Position numbers and translations under genes: made by a program. Under the pieces are notes generated by a model that did no database searches, was not told the DNA's origin, and was given only the letters and a program-made list of their open reading frames with translations. From sequence record ON287370.1: a stretch of DNA of 64,000 nt. One strand, written 5' to 3'. This document shows, in pieces, positions 293 to 59,259 of the stretch. How positions within the stretch are numbered: the stretch's first letter is position 1; the number at the start of each line of letters is the position of its first letter.

Positions 293-3200
293 TTAGTTTT
301 CAGGTAAGAAGTCACCAGGTAACAGAATAGCATCTGTATCGCCAATTTCAAATACAGAACCAGTGGAACCAAGTACAGACGAACCTTGTCTGGTAGTTGT
401 AAATGTAGCCCCATCCAGAGAGAACCGGTTATACGGGATAATGCGGTCTATCTGTGTAGGTCCACAATAAACAGTAGCAATCAAGGACTGAGATGCGCTC
501 TCAGGTCTAACTTCTAAACCAACCGAGTATTTCGCTAAACCACCACTATAGTAGAGGTAAACGTAATATGTCTTGTTGGCTGGATCAGGATCGATATCCA
601 GAATGTCGATATACTGAGCAGGAATGTTGTACATTTTACCTGCTAACAGAATGTTCGTCATTTTCTGGAAATAGATGGTATAGGCAGGAGTGATAATATT
701 CGTCGCCCCAACTACCATGGGTCCTGAAAAATCATAACTAGCGATGGCTTGGTAGATCGGTATGTTTTGATTTGTGGCTGTACCTGCGTTACCTGCAGTC
801 TCAAATAGATTAAGCCCTTTATCGGTGTTGATCATACCGTACCATGGGGAATGGTCGAGAGATCCGATGATGTTCCAATATGTACCGTACATCTGCATGC
901 TATTCATGATCTGATGATTGGCGGCATTAACTTCCAGAACAACGTTTACACGACCATCACCATACTGAGCATTATACTTAGAGTCAAAACGGAAATTAAT
1001 AGTGTAAGTCGAATCGTCAACTACTTGACCATTACCTGGGTTGCGAGCTTTATATGGTACTGATGTGCAAGCACCTTGATAGATCTTAGACCCACCTAGT
1101 TCATTAAACCAGGTAAATGTATAGTCATCCCCACCTTGAGCAGCTAATTGGTCAGTTACTATGGTGTGAACTTCAGATGCCTGATTCCAAATAACATCGC
1201 GGTAGTATTGATAACCATCTTTGTTAGTTGGAGTTGAATATCCACCAAGCATACCGATAACAAATGCCGCTGTACACTTACTCCCTTCGATTTTGTACAC
1301 CCCGAATATTTCTCTGATATACCCACGTGTATCCACAAACCGACCAACAGTCCATGAATTAGTGACTTGAGAAGCATTAAAGCCATAAGGTGCGAATAAC
1401 TGGACCAACTGATTACGGACAAAGGTATTTAAATCGAATACAACTTTAGGAGTAAAGTTAATAACATTATTGACCAGCTTGGTTTGCATTTCCCAGACTA
1501 AAAGTCCATCCCCATTAAAACCACGACCTCCATTACCTTTACCTGTAATGTAAGTACCTGCTGAGGCACCTAACATAGACACGGCATAGATATTTGGTCT
1601 GTTATATGGGTTGTTTACACCGGCTGGTTTAGAAATGTTATTAAACCGTACCTGCTGACCTAAGTTAGTCTGATGAACTTCAGATAGGTAAGGATAGTGC
1701 TCAACATTTTGGCCGCCGTATACTGAGATCTCTGGTGGTTTACGAACACTATAATCGGTATTATAGATATCGGCTTTACGAGCAATCCACTGAGGGACCA
1801 TCTTACCATCTTTAACGATTAACTGTTTAGTCATCAAACAGCCAGACTTAGGATCATCACTATCCATCGGATAATAATAGTTCCCAACAAACCCGGCTGA
1901 TAAACCAATAGGGTTCAGTTCATCGAAGGTACGATAACCATCACCATCATAATAACGGTTTTGACCACCCGCCATCAGAATGTTTTCTGGTGTTTTCAAC
2001 CAGTCACATTGAAGCATGAAGTAAGGGCTTGGGAATGTACCGTTTGCTGCACCATCCGCAAATACAATAAAGTTATCCGCAATCATTGCGTGACCGACTA
2101 AGTCACATCCATCTGGATAGCTACCGGTAAATACCCATTTATAATAATCGTCATATTCCTTAACACCAGGTTTACGGTTATAAGGATCTATGGTGTAAAG
2201 CTTATCAGAGCCTTCAGATGGTTTAATGTGGACAGTGACATTATCACCATTAAAGTCAAATGTTAGTCTGGCTCTATATTGAGCATGGAACCCATTCCAT
2301 CCACCAGGTTTATCAGTTTCAGCAGAAGTAATCTGAAGTTTAAAATTCCAGACATCTTCATTCTGCATTTTCTTCCAATAACTGAATATGGTACGGTGAC
2401 CCCAGATACTTTTACTAGGTGGATCGTAGCGAGCATAGTGAGATAGGATCTCATAATCCTGGTCCCCGTCCTTACCAAACTCAGGCCACCAAGGTGTAAA
2501 GTATTTATCATTCTTATTACCAAACACAGGGTGAGTAAAATCTACATTAGCCCTGATACCTTTACTAGAAAGGTTATGGAAAACGATGAATGAGAAACCA
2601 GCTTCACCTAAGTTAATACCTCGAACGTTATACCAATTAGAAGGGTGTTCTAATTGACGACGTTCTTCAAACTGCCAGAGGTTATAACCCTGAACGATAC
2701 ACCAAGTATTGGGGTAAGTCGAGTCAGCTAACAGACACATCTTAGAAGTAGGGTGGTCAATCCATCCACCACGCTTATCAGCGAGGTCTTCATCAATCCA
2801 AACACCAGTAATACGATGGAGTACGTGGCGGTTAGGGTTAAAGGTACCTTTGGTCTCACACCAATACCAGATATTCTTAACTGAGTCGCCAACAACCATG
2901 ATGTAACGGTTTGAACCATTCATGATGGTATCTAACTGAGCACCATCTGCTGTTGCAGTTGGGTGAACATACTGATACGAAGTAAACTCGTAGTCAGGAT
3001 TCTGAGAACGCCAGTTAACGGAGCGAATAAAATAGAGACCACGAATCTTACCGTTGTTACGGTGCTGAAGCATCAACAGAGTACCATCAGTTTCAACAAT
3101 CGCACCTGACTGTCTATTTAAACCACCAAGACCTTCGAAGGAACCAGAGATGGTTGGAGGAATGAATGTGTCAGACCCGTATCGCAGAATAGGTAGAGCA

Positions 3201-4027
3201 CCTGCTGGATATAGTCTCTCATTCGTCCCTGAAGCTGCCATAGCGGCACGCTTAGCATTAAATGGTGTAACTGTAAGATCGTCTCGTAAACCTTCCAGAG
3301 TCTCTTGCAGGTTGGCTGCTGGGATGTTATCTACTAAGTCAAGACCTATCTTAGTTTTGTCAGTACCGTGGGCGTCATGCTTGTTGTTGATATGTGACTG
3401 GACAAGATCATTAATAACTTTTTTGTAACCTTCTACGTATACCTTGAGGTGATCCTTCAACATCTGAACCATGAAGTCTTGTGCAGACACCATAGTTGCT
3501 TGCAGTTCAGCAATACGATTCAGTTCACGAACCAAGTCAGTGAAACCATAGATCTGATATGCTAAATCATGCTGGTGAATTTCTGGAATAAACCAAAGCG
3601 GTCTGTTTTGAATATTTTCAAAATCAACATAACGATCATCTTCATGAATGCTTTTCAGCATATTCAGAATTTCATTGGTGATCTTGTTAAAGTTACCAAC
3701 AACTTGATAATCGATATACCACTCAGTGATTTCATCTTTAAGGATGCGAATAAAGAGACCTACAGGTTTACCAGTAAACTTAGTAAGCTTACCCATAATT
3801 CCATAGAACTCGTAATCCTCATTCTCTACCAGTGGCTTTCTATTCTTATCGTACAGTCTTACAGACTTCTGATAGAAAGGAGCATAATTGGGAATGACGA
3901 TGTTATTATTCTTTACATCCTGACGATACATGAATTCCTGATTGACTTTATTAAAACGGTCTTCACCGGTTAAGTCAAGCTTATATAAAGGAATGTCTTC
4001 TTTGATCATTGGATATAACCTTTTCAT
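293..4027 (-). CDS. Large tail fibre / baseplate-associated virion protein (phiKZ gp145/146-like family); likely start 4009
   Basis: 1244 aa ORF with a conserved N-terminal domain, then an H..GTDK..IGL..VDN fibre-type motif, then a long beta/aromatic-rich body. Met7 (4009) has an AAGG SD; Met1 is directly preceded by a hairpin. Confidence 0.7.
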   Translation of the reverse strand: MKRLYPMIKEDIPLYKLDLTGEDRFNKVNQEFMYRQDVKNNNIVIPNYAPFYQKSVRLYDKNRKPLVENEDYEFYGIMGKLTKFTGKPVGLFIRILKDEITEWYIDYQVVGNFNKITNEILNMLKSIHEDDRYVDFENIQNRPLWFIPEIHQHDLAYQIYGFTDLVRELNRIAELQATMVSAQDFMVQMLKDHLKVYVEGYKKVINDLVQSHINNKHDAHGTDKTKIGLDLVDNIPAANLQETLEGLRDDLTVTPFNAKRAAMAASGTNERLYPAGALPILRYGSDTFIPPTISGSFEGLGGLNRQSGAIVETDGTLLMLQHRNNGKIRGLYFIRSVNWRSQNPDYEFTSYQYVHPTATADGAQLDTIMNGSNRYIMVVGDSVKNIWYWCETKGTFNPNRHVLHRITGVWIDEDLADKRGGWIDHPTSKMCLLADSTYPNTWCIVQGYNLWQFEERRQLEHPSNWYNVRGINLGEAGFSFIVFHNLSSKGIRANVDFTHPVFGNKNDKYFTPWWPEFGKDGDQDYEILSHYARYDPPSKSIWGHRTIFSYWKKMQNEDVWNFKLQITSAETDKPGGWNGFHAQYRARLTFDFNGDNVTVHIKPSEGSDKLYTIDPYNRKPGVKEYDDYYKWVFTGSYPDGCDLVGHAMIADNFIVFADGAANGTFPSPYFMLQCDWLKTPENILMAGGQNRYYDGDGYRTFDELNPIGLSAGFVGNYYYPMDSDDPKSGCLMTKQLIVKDGKMVPQWIARKADIYNTDYSVRKPPEISVYGGQNVEHYPYLSEVHQTNLGQQVRFNNISKPAGVNNPYNRPNIYAVSMLGASAGTYITGKGNGGRGFNGDGLLVWEMQTKLVNNVINFTPKVVFDLNTFVRNQLVQLFAPYGFNASQVTNSWTVGRFVDTRGYIREIFGVYKIEGSKCTAAFVIGMLGGYSTPTNKDGYQYYRDVIWNQASEVHTIVTDQLAAQGGDDYTFTWFNELGGSKIYQGACTSVPYKARNPGNGQVVDDSTYTINFRFDSKYNAQYGDGRVNVVLEVNAANHQIMNSMQMYGTYWNIIGSLDHSPWYGMINTDKGLNLFETAGNAGTATNQNIPIYQAIASYDFSGPMVVGATNIITPAYTIYFQKMTNILLAGKMYNIPAQYIDILDIDPDPANKTYYVYLYYSGGLAKYSVGLEVRPESASQSLIATVYCGPTQIDRIIPYNRFSLDGATFTTTRQGSSVLGSTGSVFEIGDTDAILLPGDFLPEN

Positions 4028-12156: not shown

Positions 12157-15042
12157 ATGACTAGTAGATTACCCAAAGGGGTAAAACCGATCGACAGGAC
12201 TAAAGTAAGAGGTAGATTGAAAAATCCATCTCCTTTAGACAAAAGCATGCGTTCGTTGCTAGTAAAAGATAGCACCATTCGTAATGATAAAGATAGAGAG
12301 AATATGTCTAAGCCACCAGTGGCTAAAGTTAAAAGTCTCTCTGACATCATCAGTAATAATATCCAGGCTAATAACGACCTGCGTACTATTACTCACTTTA
12401 TCAAACGCGCTGAACAGATCTGGACTACCCTTCTGCTGAAGCCCAATGGCGATCAGCGAAATCTTCTCATCTATGATACAGAAAGTTCTGATATCAAAAA
12501 CAGTAAGCTTCATGAGCTTTTGATCCAAAAAGTAGAAAACTACTTTACGACAAAATACCCTTTTGAAGAGTTAGCGCCTCAAATTATTAAAGATGTTCTT
12601 TTCCGTACAGGTTCATACGTCCATTTAAGCTTATCTCATGCGGCTTTGGACCATTTGATCAACGGTATGGAAGTTGAGGTTTCCGGTAATGAATCCTTAG
12701 TCCGTAGTACTACCGCTAAAGTACTTACTGAACAGTTTGTTAATGGTAACTGGAATACCGCTAAGAACGTTGGCTATATTCGTAAGGAAAGGAAAAGCAC
12801 AGCCGGTAGCTTTGTTGGTTTCGAAGCACTGTATGGCGATGTAGGGGAACGTGATCCAGAATACCATTTGGTTCACCCTGATCTTAAATTTACCTTTACG
12901 GATAACCCCGTTGTTCTCAAGGTAGGTGAACTGGCTTCTAGACTTCGTGAAGAACGTCTTAAGAAGATCGGTGGTATGGAAGGTATTGATGACGCTATCA
13001 ATAACCGTTGGGTTAAAGAGAAAGGTAAACGTCACAAAACCAACAATAACCATGTCAATGCCATTTCCAGAAAAACTCTGGAAGATGAACTGGATACTTT
13101 ATATCCTGATCGTCATTATGATAAGAATGAAACCTTATCTGTACGTAAGGGTAAATACTACACTGGTGATGGGCGTGGTATTGGTATTGATTACCACTGG
13201 CCTTCTGAAGCTGACATCCCTGTTAACATTAATGGTGAAATCGGTAAACCATTTGGTCACATTCTTTTGCTTGATCCAGAAACTGGTGAACCACTTAAAT
13301 CCACGACTGATGTTAAATACTATCAGAAGACTAAAGGTGCTCAAGAGAACACTGATGGTCCGAAGATGGGTTCTATTAATGATATCGTACAGCATATCCG
13401 AAATGTAGCTCAAGGTTCTGAGTGTAATGAAGATATGGAGTGGATGGTTAACTTTGCTTCCGCTACTCTTGAGAAAGAACTGATTGAAGGTTTCTTGAAT
13501 GGTGATCTTCATAAAGATGTTACCATTTCTCTGACTGAAGAGAACAAGAAACTGTTCTGGTCTCGTGCTATGCGTGATCAAGGTGTACGTGCTGTATTCG
13601 TACCTTCTGATTATGTTACTTATGTAGCTATCGACTTTAACCGTTTAGGTACTGGTCGTTCTCTGGTTGATGAAGCTAAACTTCACATCACTCGTTTAGC
13701 AGTTCTTGATACTGCTGATGCTCTTGCACAGGTAGAGAACTCTATCTCTCATACTCTTCTGGAGATTACTCCTGAGCGTGAAGATATCGATGTTCGAAAC
13801 ACTATTGCTATGGCACGTGATGAGTGGTTTGCTAACAACCCTACATTGCACGACATCATTGGTTATAACAACGTATCCATTGATGCTGTTCTTGACCGCT
13901 TTAAAGAACAAACCCTGACTATCAAAGTCAATCCAGGTGATAACCCTTATGTGGCAGCTCCAGAATTCCAAGCTGGTCAGATGCAACGTGAACCACTTAA
14001 ATCGATTGACCGTGATACTCGTGATAACTTATTAAATACCATTGCAGGTTACTTTGGTCTGAAACGTAGTTGGCTGGAAGATACTGGTGAAGGTAATGAC
14101 TTCGCAATTGAGGCACTTGCTGACCAGGAATTACTCCGTAACCAAACTAACGATTACTCTCGTACCTTCTCTCGTTACTTCACTGACATTATGCGTAAAC
14201 ACATGCGTGTCAATGAACCTCTTATTGGTGAGTTAGTAGACATCATCAAAGAGAACAAGAAACTGTACATGAAACCTGACCAAGGTGCGTTGGACATCAC
14301 TGACGAAGTTAAAGAGAAAGTTAACGAAGATGGTGATGATGAAATCTCAGCAGAAGAAATGGATATCATTCGTGTTGTTCTGAAAGACTTCATGAATACT
14401 TTCTATGTTGTACTTCCTACTCCAGCGATTACCGATTCACTTAACAAACTTGAAGACAAGATTGAAGCTGTTGAGAAACTGGCTACAACTTGGGTTGAGT
14501 TGGGTGGTGGTGTTAAGATGCTTCGTAAACGTGCTGAAGAAGTTGGTCTGGATGGTGAAGCTATCATCGAGTCAATTAAAGCTGTACTGTTGAATGAAGC
14601 GTTTACTCGTTTCAACCTTCCAATGCCATTTGAAGATATCTTGAGCAATGGTCAGGCAGGCGGTATTCTGAATATCATTAACAAGGCTTCTGACCTTGAT
14701 GCCAACGTTGTTAAGTTCTTGGCTGATTACCATAAGTCTGGTAAGAAGACTGAGAAGAAAGTAGATAAACTCAAAGAAAACATTGAGAAGGAAGAACAGG
14801 ATAAGTTCAATGAAGGGGCAGATGAAACTATCCCAGGTCAAGAAGAACCTATCCTCTCTGAAAATCCAAATGAAGTAAGTTTGGAAGAGAATCAAGAACA
14901 AGTTTCAGATGAGCAAACTGGTGCCGAAACTCCTTTAGAGCAAAAGGAAGAAGGTCAGGCTGAACTCGATGATGCTGAAGCTACAGATTTAGAACCAGGT
15001 TCTGAACTTAAAGGAACTGGTGATGATATCTGGGACGTGTAA
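12157..15042 (+). CDS. Portal protein (phiKZ gp129 / SPN3US gp81-like)
   Basis: ATG 12157 has a GGAGGAG SD. About 961 aa, helical, with a very acidic C-terminal tail; size and synteny near the nvRNAP subunit and capsid genes fit the Chimalliviridae portal. Confidence 0.7.
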   Translation: MTSRLPKGVKPIDRTKVRGRLKNPSPLDKSMRSLLVKDSTIRNDKDRENMSKPPVAKVKSLSDIISNNIQANNDLRTITHFIKRAEQIWTTLLLKPNGDQRNLLIYDTESSDIKNSKLHELLIQKVENYFTTKYPFEELAPQIIKDVLFRTGSYVHLSLSHAALDHLINGMEVEVSGNESLVRSTTAKVLTEQFVNGNWNTAKNVGYIRKERKSTAGSFVGFEALYGDVGERDPEYHLVHPDLKFTFTDNPVVLKVGELASRLREERLKKIGGMEGIDDAINNRWVKEKGKRHKTNNNHVNAISRKTLEDELDTLYPDRHYDKNETLSVRKGKYYTGDGRGIGIDYHWPSEADIPVNINGEIGKPFGHILLLDPETGEPLKSTTDVKYYQKTKGAQENTDGPKMGSINDIVQHIRNVAQGSECNEDMEWMVNFASATLEKELIEGFLNGDLHKDVTISLTEENKKLFWSRAMRDQGVRAVFVPSDYVTYVAIDFNRLGTGRSLVDEAKLHITRLAVLDTADALAQVENSISHTLLEITPEREDIDVRNTIAMARDEWFANNPTLHDIIGYNNVSIDAVLDRFKEQTLTIKVNPGDNPYVAAPEFQAGQMQREPLKSIDRDTRDNLLNTIAGYFGLKRSWLEDTGEGNDFAIEALADQELLRNQTNDYSRTFSRYFTDIMRKHMRVNEPLIGELVDIIKENKKLYMKPDQGALDITDEVKEKVNEDGDDEISAEEMDIIRVVLKDFMNTFYVVLPTPAITDSLNKLEDKIEAVEKLATTWVELGGGVKMLRKRAEEVGLDGEAIIESIKAVLLNEAFTRFNLPMPFEDILSNGQAGGILNIINKASDLDANVVKFLADYHKSGKKTEKKVDKLKENIEKEEQDKFNEGADETIPGQEEPILSENPNEVSLEENQEQVSDEQTGAETPLEQKEEGQAELDDAEATDLEPGSELKGTGDDIWDV

Positions 15043-15066
15043 AAAAAAATAAGTAACTAAGTTAAT

Positions 15067-49747: not shown

Positions 49748-51487
49748 ATGACAGATCAAACTGACAATCCAATTGTTGGGCGCGTTTGTAAACATGCTTA
49801 CTTATCGTTCAACAAATTTATGGACGGTAATGATTTACTTACCGCCAAAATTACCGATATCCATAAAGATGGAACTCGTAAAGATCGATTAGTAAAAATA
49901 GAAAACTTTAAACGTGACTTTTATATAGTCAAGAAGAAGTACCAGACTTTCCAAGATAAGCGAGATTACATCGAGATAGCTAAGTGTGATAAACACAGCT
50001 CCAATGAATCTCGTCTTGCAATGCAGATCAGTAAATGTCTATATGGTCGACCAGATCGTAAAGCACAGATTGGTGAACTAAAGAATAGCCCTTATGTCTT
50101 TGGTTGTCAGGAAACTGTTCCGGTTATCTTTAAAGAACGGTTCTATAAGAAGTATCCAGATCATCAACCACAGGAAGCTTATAAAGTAGCAGCATACGAC
50201 GTTGAAACCTACATCAATCAAGATGGTTCAACTGGCTGCGTTAATATGGCTTCTATTACCTGTGGCGATACAGTTTATTGGGCTGGGATACGTAGCTTCT
50301 TCCCTGGTGATGACGATGAAACTATTTATCGTAAACTGAATGAAGCAGCTGAAGAACATTTAAAAGAGTACATGGAAAAACACAAAGTTAAAATTGTGTT
50401 TGAACTCTATGATACTCCAGGTCAAGTTGTTTATAATAACATCCAAGCATTCCACCGCATTGGTCCTGATTACATTGTTAGCTGGAACGCAAACTTTGAT
50501 ATGCAGGCCAACGAAGATGCTTTAACTAATGAAGGTTATAACTTAGCTGAAGTTTATAGTGATCCTGAAGTACCTGAGCCTTATCGTGATTACTTCTACT
50601 TTAAAGGTCGTGAGTTCAAGACTAAGGTTGATGGATCTAAATCCCCATTAGAAGCACAAGAACGTTTTCCTGTTTTACAAGCACCTGCTAAATGGCAGTG
50701 GTTTGATGGGATGTCTTTCTATGCAATTAAACGTGCTCCTGGTGGTAAGAAGGAATCTTACTCTTTGCAGAACACAGCTAAGGCTGAAGGGGTGGAAGGT
50801 AAGTTATATACTCCAGAGGCAGATCATCTTCAAGCAGGTTCTACTGAATGGCACAAGTTCATGCAGAAGAACTTCCCTTATATCTACGCAATGTATAACA
50901 TTCGAGATAACTGGGTAATTGAGGATCTTAACCGTGTAACTAATGACTACTCTCTGTCATTACCTTCTCTGATTACTTCTTCTGAACTTCGTTCATATCA
51001 GTCACAGCCTTCAATGATTTCTGATAAGTTATCATTCATTGCTTTGGAACATGGATATGTTTGGGGTACTGTAGGTCGTAAGAAGGAAGATGTCTGGAAA
51101 GAGATCAAACCAGATCTTCGTGACTGGATCGCTCTGCTGCACGCTGAGCTTAATGAAGATAAAGGCAAGCCAATCTATGCAGGTCTTCCTTCATGGCGTT
51201 CTCGTGGTCGTGGTGATACGGATGATATCGACGTAACTGGTGCTTATCCTCACATTACAGTTTCACTTAATGTATCCAACAAAACAACTAAGTTGGAAGT
51301 TTGTGAGATTGAAGGTCTGGATCGTTTCGAGTTCCGTCGTGTTGGTGTGAACTATGCATCATCTCCAATCGCTAACGCAGTTACACTGTGCAATACTATT
51401 TACGGTATGCCTCAGTTGACTGAGATCAATAGTTTCTATGAAGAGTCTGTAATTCCATTCATCAAAGAGGCTAAGAAAGCAGCATAA
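49748..51487 (+). CDS. Split family-B DNA polymerase subunit (3'-5' exonuclease plus palm motif A; phiKZ gp82-like)
   Basis: ExoI AAYDVETY, ExoII SWNANFDM, ExoIII YNIRD, then motif A DIDVTGAYP. Motifs B and C are absent. Confidence 0.8.
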   Translation: MTDQTDNPIVGRVCKHAYLSFNKFMDGNDLLTAKITDIHKDGTRKDRLVKIENFKRDFYIVKKKYQTFQDKRDYIEIAKCDKHSSNESRLAMQISKCLYGRPDRKAQIGELKNSPYVFGCQETVPVIFKERFYKKYPDHQPQEAYKVAAYDVETYINQDGSTGCVNMASITCGDTVYWAGIRSFFPGDDDETIYRKLNEAAEEHLKEYMEKHKVKIVFELYDTPGQVVYNNIQAFHRIGPDYIVSWNANFDMQANEDALTNEGYNLAEVYSDPEVPEPYRDYFYFKGREFKTKVDGSKSPLEAQERFPVLQAPAKWQWFDGMSFYAIKRAPGGKKESYSLQNTAKAEGVEGKLYTPEADHLQAGSTEWHKFMQKNFPYIYAMYNIRDNWVIEDLNRVTNDYSLSLPSLITSSELRSYQSQPSMISDKLSFIALEHGYVWGTVGRKKEDVWKEIKPDLRDWIALLHAELNEDKGKPIYAGLPSWRSRGRGDTDDIDVTGAYPHITVSLNVSNKTTKLEVCEIEGLDRFEFRRVGVNYASSPIANAVTLCNTIYGMPQLTEINSFYEESVIPFIKEAKKAA

Positions 51488-51510
51488 AAAAAATAAGTAA
51501 CTAAGTTAAC

Positions 51511-53091: not shown

Positions 53092-53487
53092 TTATCCTTT
53101 ACTCTTTTGAGCTAAAGCAATGGCGGCCTTCTGAGGGTCACCATTACCACCTTGTCGAGTAGCTTCACGTTTGACGGCGTCCATCTTAGCTTTAATAGCA
53201 GCTTGCTCGCCTTCAACTAAGCCTTCAATGAAGTCCTCTATAAAATCCACAGGCATTTCAAGATAATCTTTGAAAGGCATGAATTTACTATATTCCCTTA
53301 CCCCGAACGTATGGCCAATTATCTTTGCGGACCATGGGTGGAAGAAATCCCTGGTATTGGTGTTATACCGCAAATGGGAACTCATCGATTCCTGTTCAGA
53401 GATATACCCATATTTAATCATGAAAAGCCGTCTTTCCAAGACGGCTAATTTAACATGATCTTTTTCTTTGGCTGCTGCAATGAACAA
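53092..53487 (-). CDS. ORF lacking a good independent start; probable -1 frameshift extension of 53532..55145
   Basis: The track start is TTG without a clear SD. The frame stays open up to 53655, overlapping the upstream gene in the -1 frame across a slippery heptamer. Confidence 0.6.
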   Translation of the reverse strand: MFIAAAKEKDHVKLAVLERRLFMIKYGYISEQESMSSHLRYNTNTRDFFHPWSAKIIGHTFGVREYSKFMPFKDYLEMPVDFIEDFIEGLVEGEQAAIKAKMDAVKREATRQGGNGDPQKAAIALAQKSKG

Positions 53488-53531
53488 CTCACTGCAACGG
53501 TTCAGAACACGAGGGTCTAAATCAGAGTCAC

Positions 53532-55145
53532 TTAAGAAAGACCGTCCTCTTGTAAACTCTGCTGACCGGTTCTGATTGAGATCATCATTCGGGTATGGGC
53601 GAAAAAATTCAGAATAGGATCGATTGGGGTAAACGAGTGGAGTTCTTCCTGATCTTTACCTTCTGACTTCTTCTTACAGTTAGGGCATTCATCGTCACAA
53701 ATACCGACAAAGGTATAGGACATGCGAGGAGCGATGGTGATAACTTTCTCCAGGGCACGATAATACATTTGATCGTCTTTGTTGAAGATATCCATCAGAC
53801 CTTCATCGAACTCTTTCGGGTTCTCTTCACGATAGATAACTTCTTTGGTACCTTCTGCTTCAGCCGGTGGATCGAACTCCATGGCACGGAACCATTGGAT
53901 ATATTCATGACCGCGCATCTGAGCAAGATACTCACGACGTTTTTCATCAAACACTTTCGGGTTAGCGAATTTAACAGCCAGCTCACGTAACTCAGGGTTA
54001 ATACGAGCAGCCATCTCATCATAAGCCATAAAGTACTCAGAGATATAAGGTACATCAATAATCAGACGACCATTACCTTCAGTGAGTTCTACTTTATTAT
54101 CCAGCACGTTACCTTCTTTGTCTTTATAGACAGGAGGGTTGTTAGCCAGATCTTCAGGAGATAACTTCAGACCTTCGTTAACCAGTTTGAACAGAAGAGT
54201 ACGACGTTCTTCTGGTTGATCTTCTTCAACATACAGAAGCATGTTAGCTGGATCAATAACGCTGTTAGCAGACCAACCACATTTATTAGCTAGACAGTTC
54301 ATGCGGAAAGTCACACCTTTAGGAGAAGTGATTTTCAACATAGCTTGGGCCATGTGGTTAATGTCGTTAGCCAGGATATAATTCTTCAGCTGAATTGGAT
54401 CATCAATACCTTTAACACTATGGTAGCTGACACGATCCAACATGAAGTCAATCAGAATCTGACTGATACCAGCACGTTCCAAGTGAATGGAAGTTTGGTT
54501 ATAATGCTCACCGTACATGTGAAGCTTAGTAGCCACATCGTTGATCAGTCGAACCAGATCCAGTGGGGTAGGGATCTTAACGCGCAGGAAGATCAATGAG
54601 TTAGCCAAGATGACGTTAAAGCTATCTGGAGATCCCGATGCTTTCAGGAAGGTGCGACGCATACGTTCACGCACACCCATTTCACTCTTAACGGTAGGAG
54701 TGATAGCTGAGATCAAACCTAAACGACCACCATTCTTAAGAGGAACAGTGTTGACCAGTTTACGATCACGCACTACATCTACTGTAGCATTACGGACCAG
54801 ACCACGATCGAAACCATTGAAGTAGAAACGGAAGTAGTTGGTAAGCATGTTACCAAGCAGTTCTTCTTCCACACCTTCAAAGTGAGCTTCACGGAGTTCT
54901 TCAAAACGATCTTTCAGAACGTTGGCTTGACGTTCTTCACCAGCAGCAGCTGCATCACGCCAACCCAGGAAAGCCACTGCAGTTTTGTAGATGGCTTCAT
55001 GTTCTTCTTTCAGAGTACCGACGAAGAGTGGGAGTGAAGGATCGTAGTCATCTGCTGGACCAACGAGAGCATTAGTAAGCGTAATGATTGCTGCTTCCTT
55101 GTTCACGTTTTCCTGCATTTCAGTTTGAGGAATATTCTCAGACAT
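53532..55145 (-). CDS. Tail/baseplate assembly chaperone-like protein (T4 gp26-type Cys-motif protein)
   Basis: 537 aa with CLANKC and CPNC motifs and a near-terminal ..ILNFF, resembling the ..DFF end of T4 gp26-type and myophage tail chaperones. Confidence 0.5.
   Translation of the reverse strand: MSENIPQTEMQENVNKEAAIITLTNALVGPADDYDPSLPLFVGTLKEEHEAIYKTAVAFLGWRDAAAAGEERQANVLKDRFEELREAHFEGVEEELLGNMLTNYFRFYFNGFDRGLVRNATVDVVRDRKLVNTVPLKNGGRLGLISAITPTVKSEMGVRERMRRTFLKASGSPDSFNVILANSLIFLRVKIPTPLDLVRLINDVATKLHMYGEHYNQTSIHLERAGISQILIDFMLDRVSYHSVKGIDDPIQLKNYILANDINHMAQAMLKITSPKGVTFRMNCLANKCGWSANSVIDPANMLLYVEEDQPEERRTLLFKLVNEGLKLSPEDLANNPPVYKDKEGNVLDNKVELTEGNGRLIIDVPYISEYFMAYDEMAARINPELRELAVKFANPKVFDEKRREYLAQMRGHEYIQWFRAMEFDPPAEAEGTKEVIYREENPKEFDEGLMDIFNKDDQMYYRALEKVITIAPRMSYTFVGICDDECPNCKKKSEGKDQEELHSFTPIDPILNFFAHTRMMISIRTGQQSLQEDGLS
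53601..53607 (-). promoter_or_regulatory. Candidate -1 ribosomal frameshift slippery site T TTT TTC
   Basis: In-frame AAT TTT TTC (N513-F514-F515) fits X XXY YYZ; a -1 slip enters the open frame of 53092..53487. Confidence 0.6.
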
Positions 55146-55177
55146 GTTAATACCTTATATAAGGATGAGTGAGTGAA

Positions 55178-58194: not shown

Positions 58195-59259
58195 TTACTT
58201 ACCAAATAGTGTAACTCTTTGTTCTTCAGTTATTCCTCTAGGTAATGTCTCTGCCTTTCTTAAATCAACATACTCCCAAACACATCCGCTTCTAACTATT
58301 GATGGATCTTTGGTGGCCCTGCTCACATGGGCTTGCTGGAAACCATACTTAGTTAGTTCTTTACCACCGTAGCATACGAACTTATCACCTTGGTGTTTTC
58401 CAGGAATTACTATAGTCCCCATAACTGGTTTGGTCGTGGATAGTAAAGTTACACCATCATTAACCATTCTATCAAGTAATTGAGGTGGTATTGTGTTTGT
58501 ATACGTGGCAGCTTCTTCCCTGGTTATATATGACCATGAACATCCATATGTAGTTTTAGCTTTACCTGACACTGTCTGTTGAATGGATGCTGGATCTAAA
58601 CCAAGATTCTTTATAGCGGTTCTACCATAAATAACAAACTGTGTTCCCTTCCACATGCTATCTACTACGACTGTTCCAAGTACTGGTTTAGTATTTGGAT
58701 CATCAATTCCAGACTTAACTAATCCAGTATCTATTGCATGTTGTCTATTTTCAGATTGGGTACTCCATTCTAGATTACCGAAATGAGGGCATAATTTATT
58801 ACCATCTTTATGGTTAACCTGAAGTTTAGAGTAAGGTATATCTTTATGCGATTCCTTTTTACTTATAAAGGTAGAAGCAACAGCACGATGAATGTAGATA
58901 TTTTTAAATGCTTCCTTTTCATCGTCATATATATGCGTCATCAGGTAATTAGCAGAATGAGTTCCGGTAGTGACGTGAACTTCATTTTCTTCTGGCATCC
59001 GCCAGGCTATCTCACCTCTAGATGAAACCATGATATATGGTTGATAGAGTTCCCCTTCTTTTAGATCACTATCTCTAGTCGTTCTATAGTAATTTAAATA
59101 ATCCCAGCAGTAATAGCGAGGGTTTTTCAATAGTTGTTCTTTGATATGTTCTTCTCTGGCTCTTACTTTTTCTTCTTCACTTAAATCATCTACTCCCAAT
59201 ACAGATTGAATTGGAGTGAACATATCGAAATTTGTATCTTTATAAATCAGTATGGTCAT
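58195..59259 (-). mobile_element. Free-standing HNH homing endonuclease (NUMOD4-like + HNH + two C-terminal DNA-binding repeats)
   Basis: IHRAVA.TF...QVNHKDGNK...NLEWST.SEN..HA is a classic phage HNH motif. Two repeats TKPV.GT.V......G..F..YG...L...G.........S.......GC.W.Y follow. Confidence 0.85.

Follow-up and report, generated by a model that had tools for sequence, protein, structure and literature searches.

The 64-kb window analysed here is 100% identical to Serratia phage vB_SmaM-Sureiya (ON287370.1), which is one of the jumbo phages in the OBP / N1M2 group. It carries on its minus strand two annotated genes that appear to be parts of one recoded gene. The upstream member, SUREIYA_02500 (55145–53532), encodes 537 amino acids (aa) and is listed in GenBank as a 'hypothetical protein'. 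The downstream member, SUREIYA_02490, starts in GenBank at an ATG at position 53421, and the mechanically called open reading frame (ORF) starts at a TTG at 53487. Near the end of the upstream gene, the codons AAT TTT TTC (53609–53601) contain the slippery heptamer T_TTT_TTC (53601–53607, minus strand) in the phase X_XXY_YYZ, with 22 sense codons between the heptamer and the TAA at 53534–53532. The −1 frame is closed by a stop at 53658–53656, then open from 53655 to 53095 and closed again by a stop at 53094–53092, so that it is open for 48 nucleotides (nt) ahead of the heptamer and for 169 codons beyond it. A reading made from the letters of this DNA alone (hereafter the sequence-only reading) had described the 537-aa gene, the heptamer, a TTG without a Shine-Dalgarno (SD) motif, the −1 relation of the two frames and a possible fusion of about 684 aa, and this description is accurate throughout.

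The −1-frame extension (53095–53601, minus strand) would replace the last 22 residues of the 537-aa product, and the putative long form would therefore, by arithmetic, comprise about 684 aa (515 + 169). Three segments can be told apart along it. The first (53535–53600, minus strand) is a candidate dual-coding overlap, in which the 22-codon tail of the 0 frame, a predicted C-terminal helix, lies over the first 22 codons of the extension. It is followed by a linker of 110 nt (53422–53531, minus strand) that GenBank treats as 'intergenic' but that has a −1-frame coding pattern and holds no start codon shared among relatives. The last segment (53095–53421, minus strand) is a conserved C-terminal domain of about 109 aa that coincides with the annotated gene SUREIYA_02490 and belongs to phrog_19747.

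We compared this arrangement across 33 phage loci from about 17 clades, in which the upstream proteins are 13–100% identical and all fall within phrog_4585 / phrog_8054. The set comprised Sureiya, Yubaba, N1M2, SXP01, OBP, Survivor, pEt-SU, Kc263, AH04 and four IMG/VR contigs; the Aeromonas phages PS1, AhC3_1, ZPAH34 and D3; the Vibrio and Photobacterium phages USC-1, PDCC-1, VP4B and 2 TSL-2019; Miami, KPN8, FishSpeaker, RisingSun, EL, PhiPA3, PA7 (Phikzvirus), SPN3US, Goslar, RSL2 and Ea35-70; and the Bacillus phage AgentSmith. At every one of the 33 loci the downstream gene lies in the −1 frame relative to the upstream gene, and a run of six to eight T, encoding Phe-Phe (Phe-Leu in two), is found 11–24 codons before the 0-frame stop. 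The run stands in the canonical phase T_TTT_TT(C/T/A) at 32 of the 33 sites. No stop interrupts the −1 frame in 32/32 loci over the stretch that begins at the site and ends 120 nt past the 0-frame stop; the +1 frame is open over this stretch in only 1/32. The extension is 154–180 codons long at every compared locus. The length and residues of the 0-frame tail are also conserved among relatives. Collectively, these results confirm that the arrangement is real and far beyond chance, and that orthologues keep the features that the sequence-only reading had singled out for testing, namely a heptamer, an open −1 frame and a linker conserved as coding DNA.

Conservation at the site extends to the codon that precedes the first Phe codon. 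In 31/32 loci this codon is AAT, ACT, GGT, GCT, AGT, GTT or CTT; it thus specifies any of seven amino acids and always has T as its last base. To judge from these alignments, the fixed T ending is the product of selection at the nucleotide level. When the Sureiya extension was used as a tblastn query, it aligned in one piece, from residue 1 across both annotated coding sequences (CDSs), in at least 29 records, and none of the records matched in this search annotates the pair as a joined CDS. In one EL-like record, PQ287644.1 (Pseudomonas phage HHBS8_1), the match to the upstream gene itself is split in two and falls under two annotated CDSs, which suggests a further frame break or an assembly error in that genome.

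Patterns of substitution indicate that the DNA between the two annotated genes is translated. Over the 35 linker codons from the 0-frame stop to the domain, Sureiya and N1M2 differ at 2, 3 and 17 sites at −1-frame codon positions 1, 2 and 3, respectively (P = 3e-5), and 13 pairs pooled gave 164, 118 and 275 differences (P = 4e-15). The undisputed downstream domain has a distribution of the same shape (410/277/714). The third-position bias in the linker begins already upstream of the TTG at 53487. Because third codon positions carry this excess of substitutions, the linker is, on comparative grounds, coding DNA that evolves in the −1 frame and hence is translated. The overlap behaves differently from the sequence immediately upstream of it: only 2/75 nt are changed between Sureiya and N1M2, compared with 22/90 immediately upstream, and the corresponding values for AH04 and a close relative are 2/75 and 23/90. 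Residues are conserved in both frames of the overlap, including two invariant Pro residues in the −1 frame. Such a near-frozen overlap with both frames conserved is what would be expected of two frames in simultaneous use.

We therefore propose that the gene pair may be a single recoded gene. Most ribosomes would read the 537-codon 0 frame to its stop and yield a short form that ends in the helix. A fraction of them, holding two Phe-tRNAs on the TTT TTC of T_TTT_TTC (53607–53601), would slip back by one base, with both tRNAs re-pairing on TTT TTT, and would continue through 169 −1-frame codons that span the 'intergenic' DNA and the annotated downstream gene. In the resulting long form, a linker of about 60 residues that contains Pro, followed by a conserved domain about 110 residues long, would stand in place of the terminal helix. 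By analogy with phage assembly factors that come in two forms, the body common to both would carry out one task, and the added domain would link it to a partner. A hidden programmed −1 frameshift is what the sequence-only reading had put forward, and the conserved site, the open −1 frame and the coding linker support it. That recoding by one mechanism or another yields a fusion product is very probable from the comparisons above; for a slip that is specifically ribosomal, producing the 537-aa and ~684-aa forms, we put the probability at roughly 0.7. Tandem slippage by the ribosome is favoured because 32 of the 33 sites have the canonical phase and because six T is short for known cases of transcriptional slippage.

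Several observations weigh against this proposal. PhiPA3 departs from the canonical phase, its site being GTG TTT TTT ACC, which leaves 'at least six T' as the strict invariant, and a transcriptional slip or a P-site slip by a single tRNA would fit that invariant equally well. No downstream stimulatory RNA structure is conserved among the relatives; folding of the 70 nt past the site gave a mean z of 0.19, with 1/30 sequences below −2. There is likewise no SD-like motif upstream of the slippery site. Frameshift sites that lack stimulators do exist among phage tail chaperone genes and work at an efficiency of a few per cent, and slipping here is probably also of low efficiency, as we found no stimulator. 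The support for a fusion product is comparative throughout. Independent internal initiation may, moreover, be added to the frameshift in some OBP-like and Aeromonas-clade phages; this is conceivable because phages of these clades often keep Met as residue 1 of the conserved domain (the ATG at 53421 in Sureiya).

The same long protein would arise if the phage RNA polymerase stuttered on the T-run and added one U in a share of the transcripts. Features common to all the loci speak for such transcriptional slippage, in that a run of six to eight T, rather than a codon phase, is what holds strictly over the 33 loci, and the lack of a ribosomal stimulator is also in its favour. Jumbo phages of this kind use unusual multisubunit RNA polymerases, which makes the idea more attractive. 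The composition of the window bears on this point as well. TTTTTTC occurs there once on both strands taken together, at the frameshift site, where 19.0 ± 4.7 occurrences are expected, and A/T runs of at least six are depleted about tenfold, with four runs (3419–3424, 15041–15049, 51486–51493 and, at the frameshift site, 53602–53607) compared with about 84 expected TTTTTT matches. Of the three runs away from the frameshift site, two look like terminators, each following a hairpin or marking a gene end where convergent genes meet, and the third, an A6, belongs to the sense strand of a 1244-aa ORF (293–4027). A purge of runs, with its non-coding remainder at terminator-like sites, is expected if runs are hazardous to the polymerase. 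It is equally expected from selection against ribosomal slippage, however, and the depletion fits selection against slippage of either kind. Programmed transcriptional slippage occurs mostly on runs of 7–9 or more, a length that the six T of Sureiya does not reach, and the canonical X_XXY_YYZ phase of 32 of the 33 sites also argues against it. Given this balance, we consider a transcriptional origin of the long form unlikely. The more specific idea that a non-canonical phage polymerase stutters on T6–T8 as a conserved trait of the nucleus-forming phages and their relatives, with the purge of runs as its footprint and a universal, hitherto unrecognised long form of core protein cg18 as its product, likewise strikes us as unlikely.

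The GenBank annotation corresponds to a third explanation, in which the two genes are ordinary ones, the second has its own start at ATG 53421 or TTG 53487, and the open −1 frame is accidental. In line with this, the conserved domain often begins with Met in phages of the OBP-like and Aeromonas clades, and OBP and SXP01 have an ATG about 45 nt past the upstream stop; the same position is AGT in Sureiya and N1M2. The TTG (53485–53487, minus strand) is not credible as a start and is CTC in N1M2. No SD-like motif precedes either ATG 53421 or TTG 53487, whereas the flanking genes have one, and across the loci such motifs are almost never found at candidate downstream starts but are present at 27/32 upstream-gene starts. 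An alignment of the −1-frame products contained no start-codon column common to most clades ahead of the conserved domain. Annotated starts of the downstream gene fall anywhere from 8 to 236 nt past the upstream stop, and their positions vary by up to 230 nt between records. Two phages have no usable start ahead of the conserved domain: in PA7 the first ATG, GTG or TTG is codon 86 after the site, and Ea35-70 is without an ATG for 110 codons after it. Independent genes would also leave unaccounted for the −1-frame coding pattern in the linker ahead of those starts, the −1 relation in 33/33 loci and the almost invariant overlap among close relatives, and we regard this explanation as very improbable.

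An 8-bp hairpin followed by TTTTC (53424–53446, minus strand) stands directly 5′ of ATG 53421, and we considered it as a terminator separating two genes. N1M2 retains the hairpin by means of a G-U pair and SXP01 retains it with both arms altered, and the other clades are without it. Since only one subclade has it, and since the DNA that contains it evolves as coding sequence, we rejected this role and discount the hairpin as evidence against a fusion. It does not belong to the frameshift signal; it could act as an attenuator or as a processing site, or could regulate internal initiation. Finally, a homopolymer sequencing error that splits one continuous gene is barely credible, even though homopolymers are error-prone on some platforms, as the same −1 relation recurs in 33 genomes sequenced independently from 2004 to 2025 with several technologies, runs of 6, 7 and 8 each hold the two frames apart, and relatives share both the length and conserved residues of the 0-frame tail.

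A programmed −1 frameshift at this locus would have close parallels among known phage genes. In the lambda G/GT and P2 E/E+E′ tail assembly chaperones, as in the scheme proposed here, a −1 slip takes place a few codons before the upstream stop, the second ORF is start-less, and the minor, longer product consists of the body of the major one plus a C-terminal domain encoded by that ORF. P2 E/E+E′ also slips on a T-run heptamer. The label of G/GT-type tail assembly chaperone that the sequence-only reading had given to the 537-aa protein nevertheless fails on similarity, on size and on gene position. Searches of Pfam and PHROGs revealed no likeness to tail assembly chaperone families, chaperone matches in BFVD appeared only at E > 1, and the lambda and P2 proteins have no sequence or fold similarity to this one. 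Their short forms are about 100–150 aa long, compared with 537 aa here. They also sit between the tube and tape-measure genes, whereas this pair does not, and in this respect the sequence-only reading was right that the pair does not adjoin the tape-measure gene. The link to the G/GT chaperones is thus an analogy of mechanism and not one of family membership. Another parallel is T7 gene 10A/10B, in which a −1 shift at Phe codons close to the 3′ end of the gene adds a C-terminal extension to a minor share of the product. It differs in that the protein belongs to the capsid and the extension is short; the two are not homologous, and the T7 protein has no separate conserved domain fused to it.

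The 537-aa protein can be placed within a family common to many jumbo phages. It belongs to phrog_4585 (E 6.6e-101), and a chain of tblastn searches leads from it to EL and PhiPA3, whose record notes equate PhiPA3 gp074 with phiKZ gp077, 201phi2-1 gp136 and EL gp47. In Table S3 of Prichard et al. (PMC10299810), Goslar gp081, phiKZ gp077 and RAY gp267 are core gene cg18, a 'hypothetical protein' that is not unique to chimallin-encoding phages, and the downstream ORF is absent from that core-gene list. By membership in the same PHROG, synteny beside the virion RNA polymerase beta′ gene and the PhiPA3 record notes, the 537-aa gene is an orthologue of these and hence the Chimalliviridae core gene cg18. 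A profile search returned 827 cluster representatives, in which the match typically ends just after the Phe-Phe motif; there were no natural in-frame fusions among the best 150 of the 827, all of which end at most about 20 residues from the C terminus. In a confident AlphaFold2 (AF2) model of the 537-aa protein (predicted local distance difference test score (pLDDT) 80.8, predicted template modelling score (pTM) 0.82), the last 27 residues form a helix that begins at the slippery site. Cysteines C284, C289, C487 and C490 are invariant, from which we infer a predicted metal site.

The function of the protein was approached through sequence and structure comparisons. No named family emerged when Pfam, PHROGs and the PDB were searched by sequence, whether with the 537-aa protein, with its profile or with ten distant relatives, and Foldseek found no match for the model in the PDB below E = 1. 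Beyond members of the family, Foldseek against BFVD returned a weak match (E 1.2e-3) to a 'Baseplate hub assembly protein, bacteriophage T4-like', covering the C-terminal half of the protein, with template modelling scores of 0.50 on the target and 0.30 on the query. A distant member, P0197, resembles Pfam T4_baseplate (PF12322; E 0.0076, 16.4 bits against a cut-off of 24.5) and, over the same stretch, phrog_150 'baseplate hub' (E 0.0092), and the Sureiya 537-aa protein itself matches neither PF12322 nor phrog_150. These three weak signals agree with one another, and every one lies below curated thresholds. The sequence-only reading had brought up T4 gp26-type proteins; on this point the searches gave weak links to the T4_baseplate / baseplate hub family, none of them above threshold.

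Because of this weak likeness to T4-type baseplate hub proteins, which is confined to the C-terminal half of the family, the comparisons point to a role in tail or baseplate assembly, as a lead only. The T4_baseplate proteins differ in length, the protein described here being about twice as long, and we know of no frameshift in the T4 baseplate hub protein. A homologue in phage Churi is listed with non-structural proteins that are present at 15 min post-infection (PMC11849849). Neither gp081 nor gp082 is named in the text of the Goslar virion structure paper, and the 'gp77' that appears in it is a different protein. As for the extension, it matches no named family in Pfam or PHROGs, and an AF2 model of its 169 aa (pLDDT 53.8) is too weak to use. 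Members of the family go under several annotations in the related records: hypothetical, 'ZipA-like cell division protein', 'baseplate protein' and 'baseplate hub assembly protein'.

The neighbours of the gene pair in Sureiya are the virion RNA polymerase beta′ gene, a virion structural protein, hypothetical proteins and DNA polymerase, and a test of its placement relative to tail tube and tape-measure genes did not find it between such genes. An HNH endonuclease gene at 58195–59259 adjoins the virion RNA polymerase beta′ gene, and the gene at the matching position in N1M2 is annotated merely as hypothetical. Just upstream of the start of the 537-aa gene, at about 55153–55164 on the minus strand, lies the palindrome CCTTATATAAGG, and OBP, Survivor, pEt-SU and Kc263 have similar motifs at the equivalent position; the palindrome may serve this clade as a promoter or operator.

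Programmed −1 frameshifting is known from tailed-phage genes, and what appears to be new here is the protein family in which it occurs and the unusually deep conservation of the event. The full-text literature, the coverage of which excludes most subscription journals, yielded no published account of a frameshift in this gene or in Chimalliviridae, in keeping with the sequence-only reading, which knew of none for Chimalliviridae. The gene is one of about 70 core genes common to all nucleus-forming jumbo phages. If the recoding is as we propose, more than 250 deposited genomes mis-annotate the locus, showing an intergenic gap that is not real and a small gene whose start is arbitrary, and the small downstream ORF becomes part of the core protein cg18. 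It would be the first conserved recoding event of the family, extending from phages of Pseudomonas and enterobacteria to a Bacillus phage, and we argue that the ratio of the two forms matters because the event has been kept so widely. The locus would also offer a natural U-run frameshift site without stimulators for study. It would, in addition, provide a handle on the function of cg18, the two forms of which would differ in one C-terminal module, as in assembly factors.

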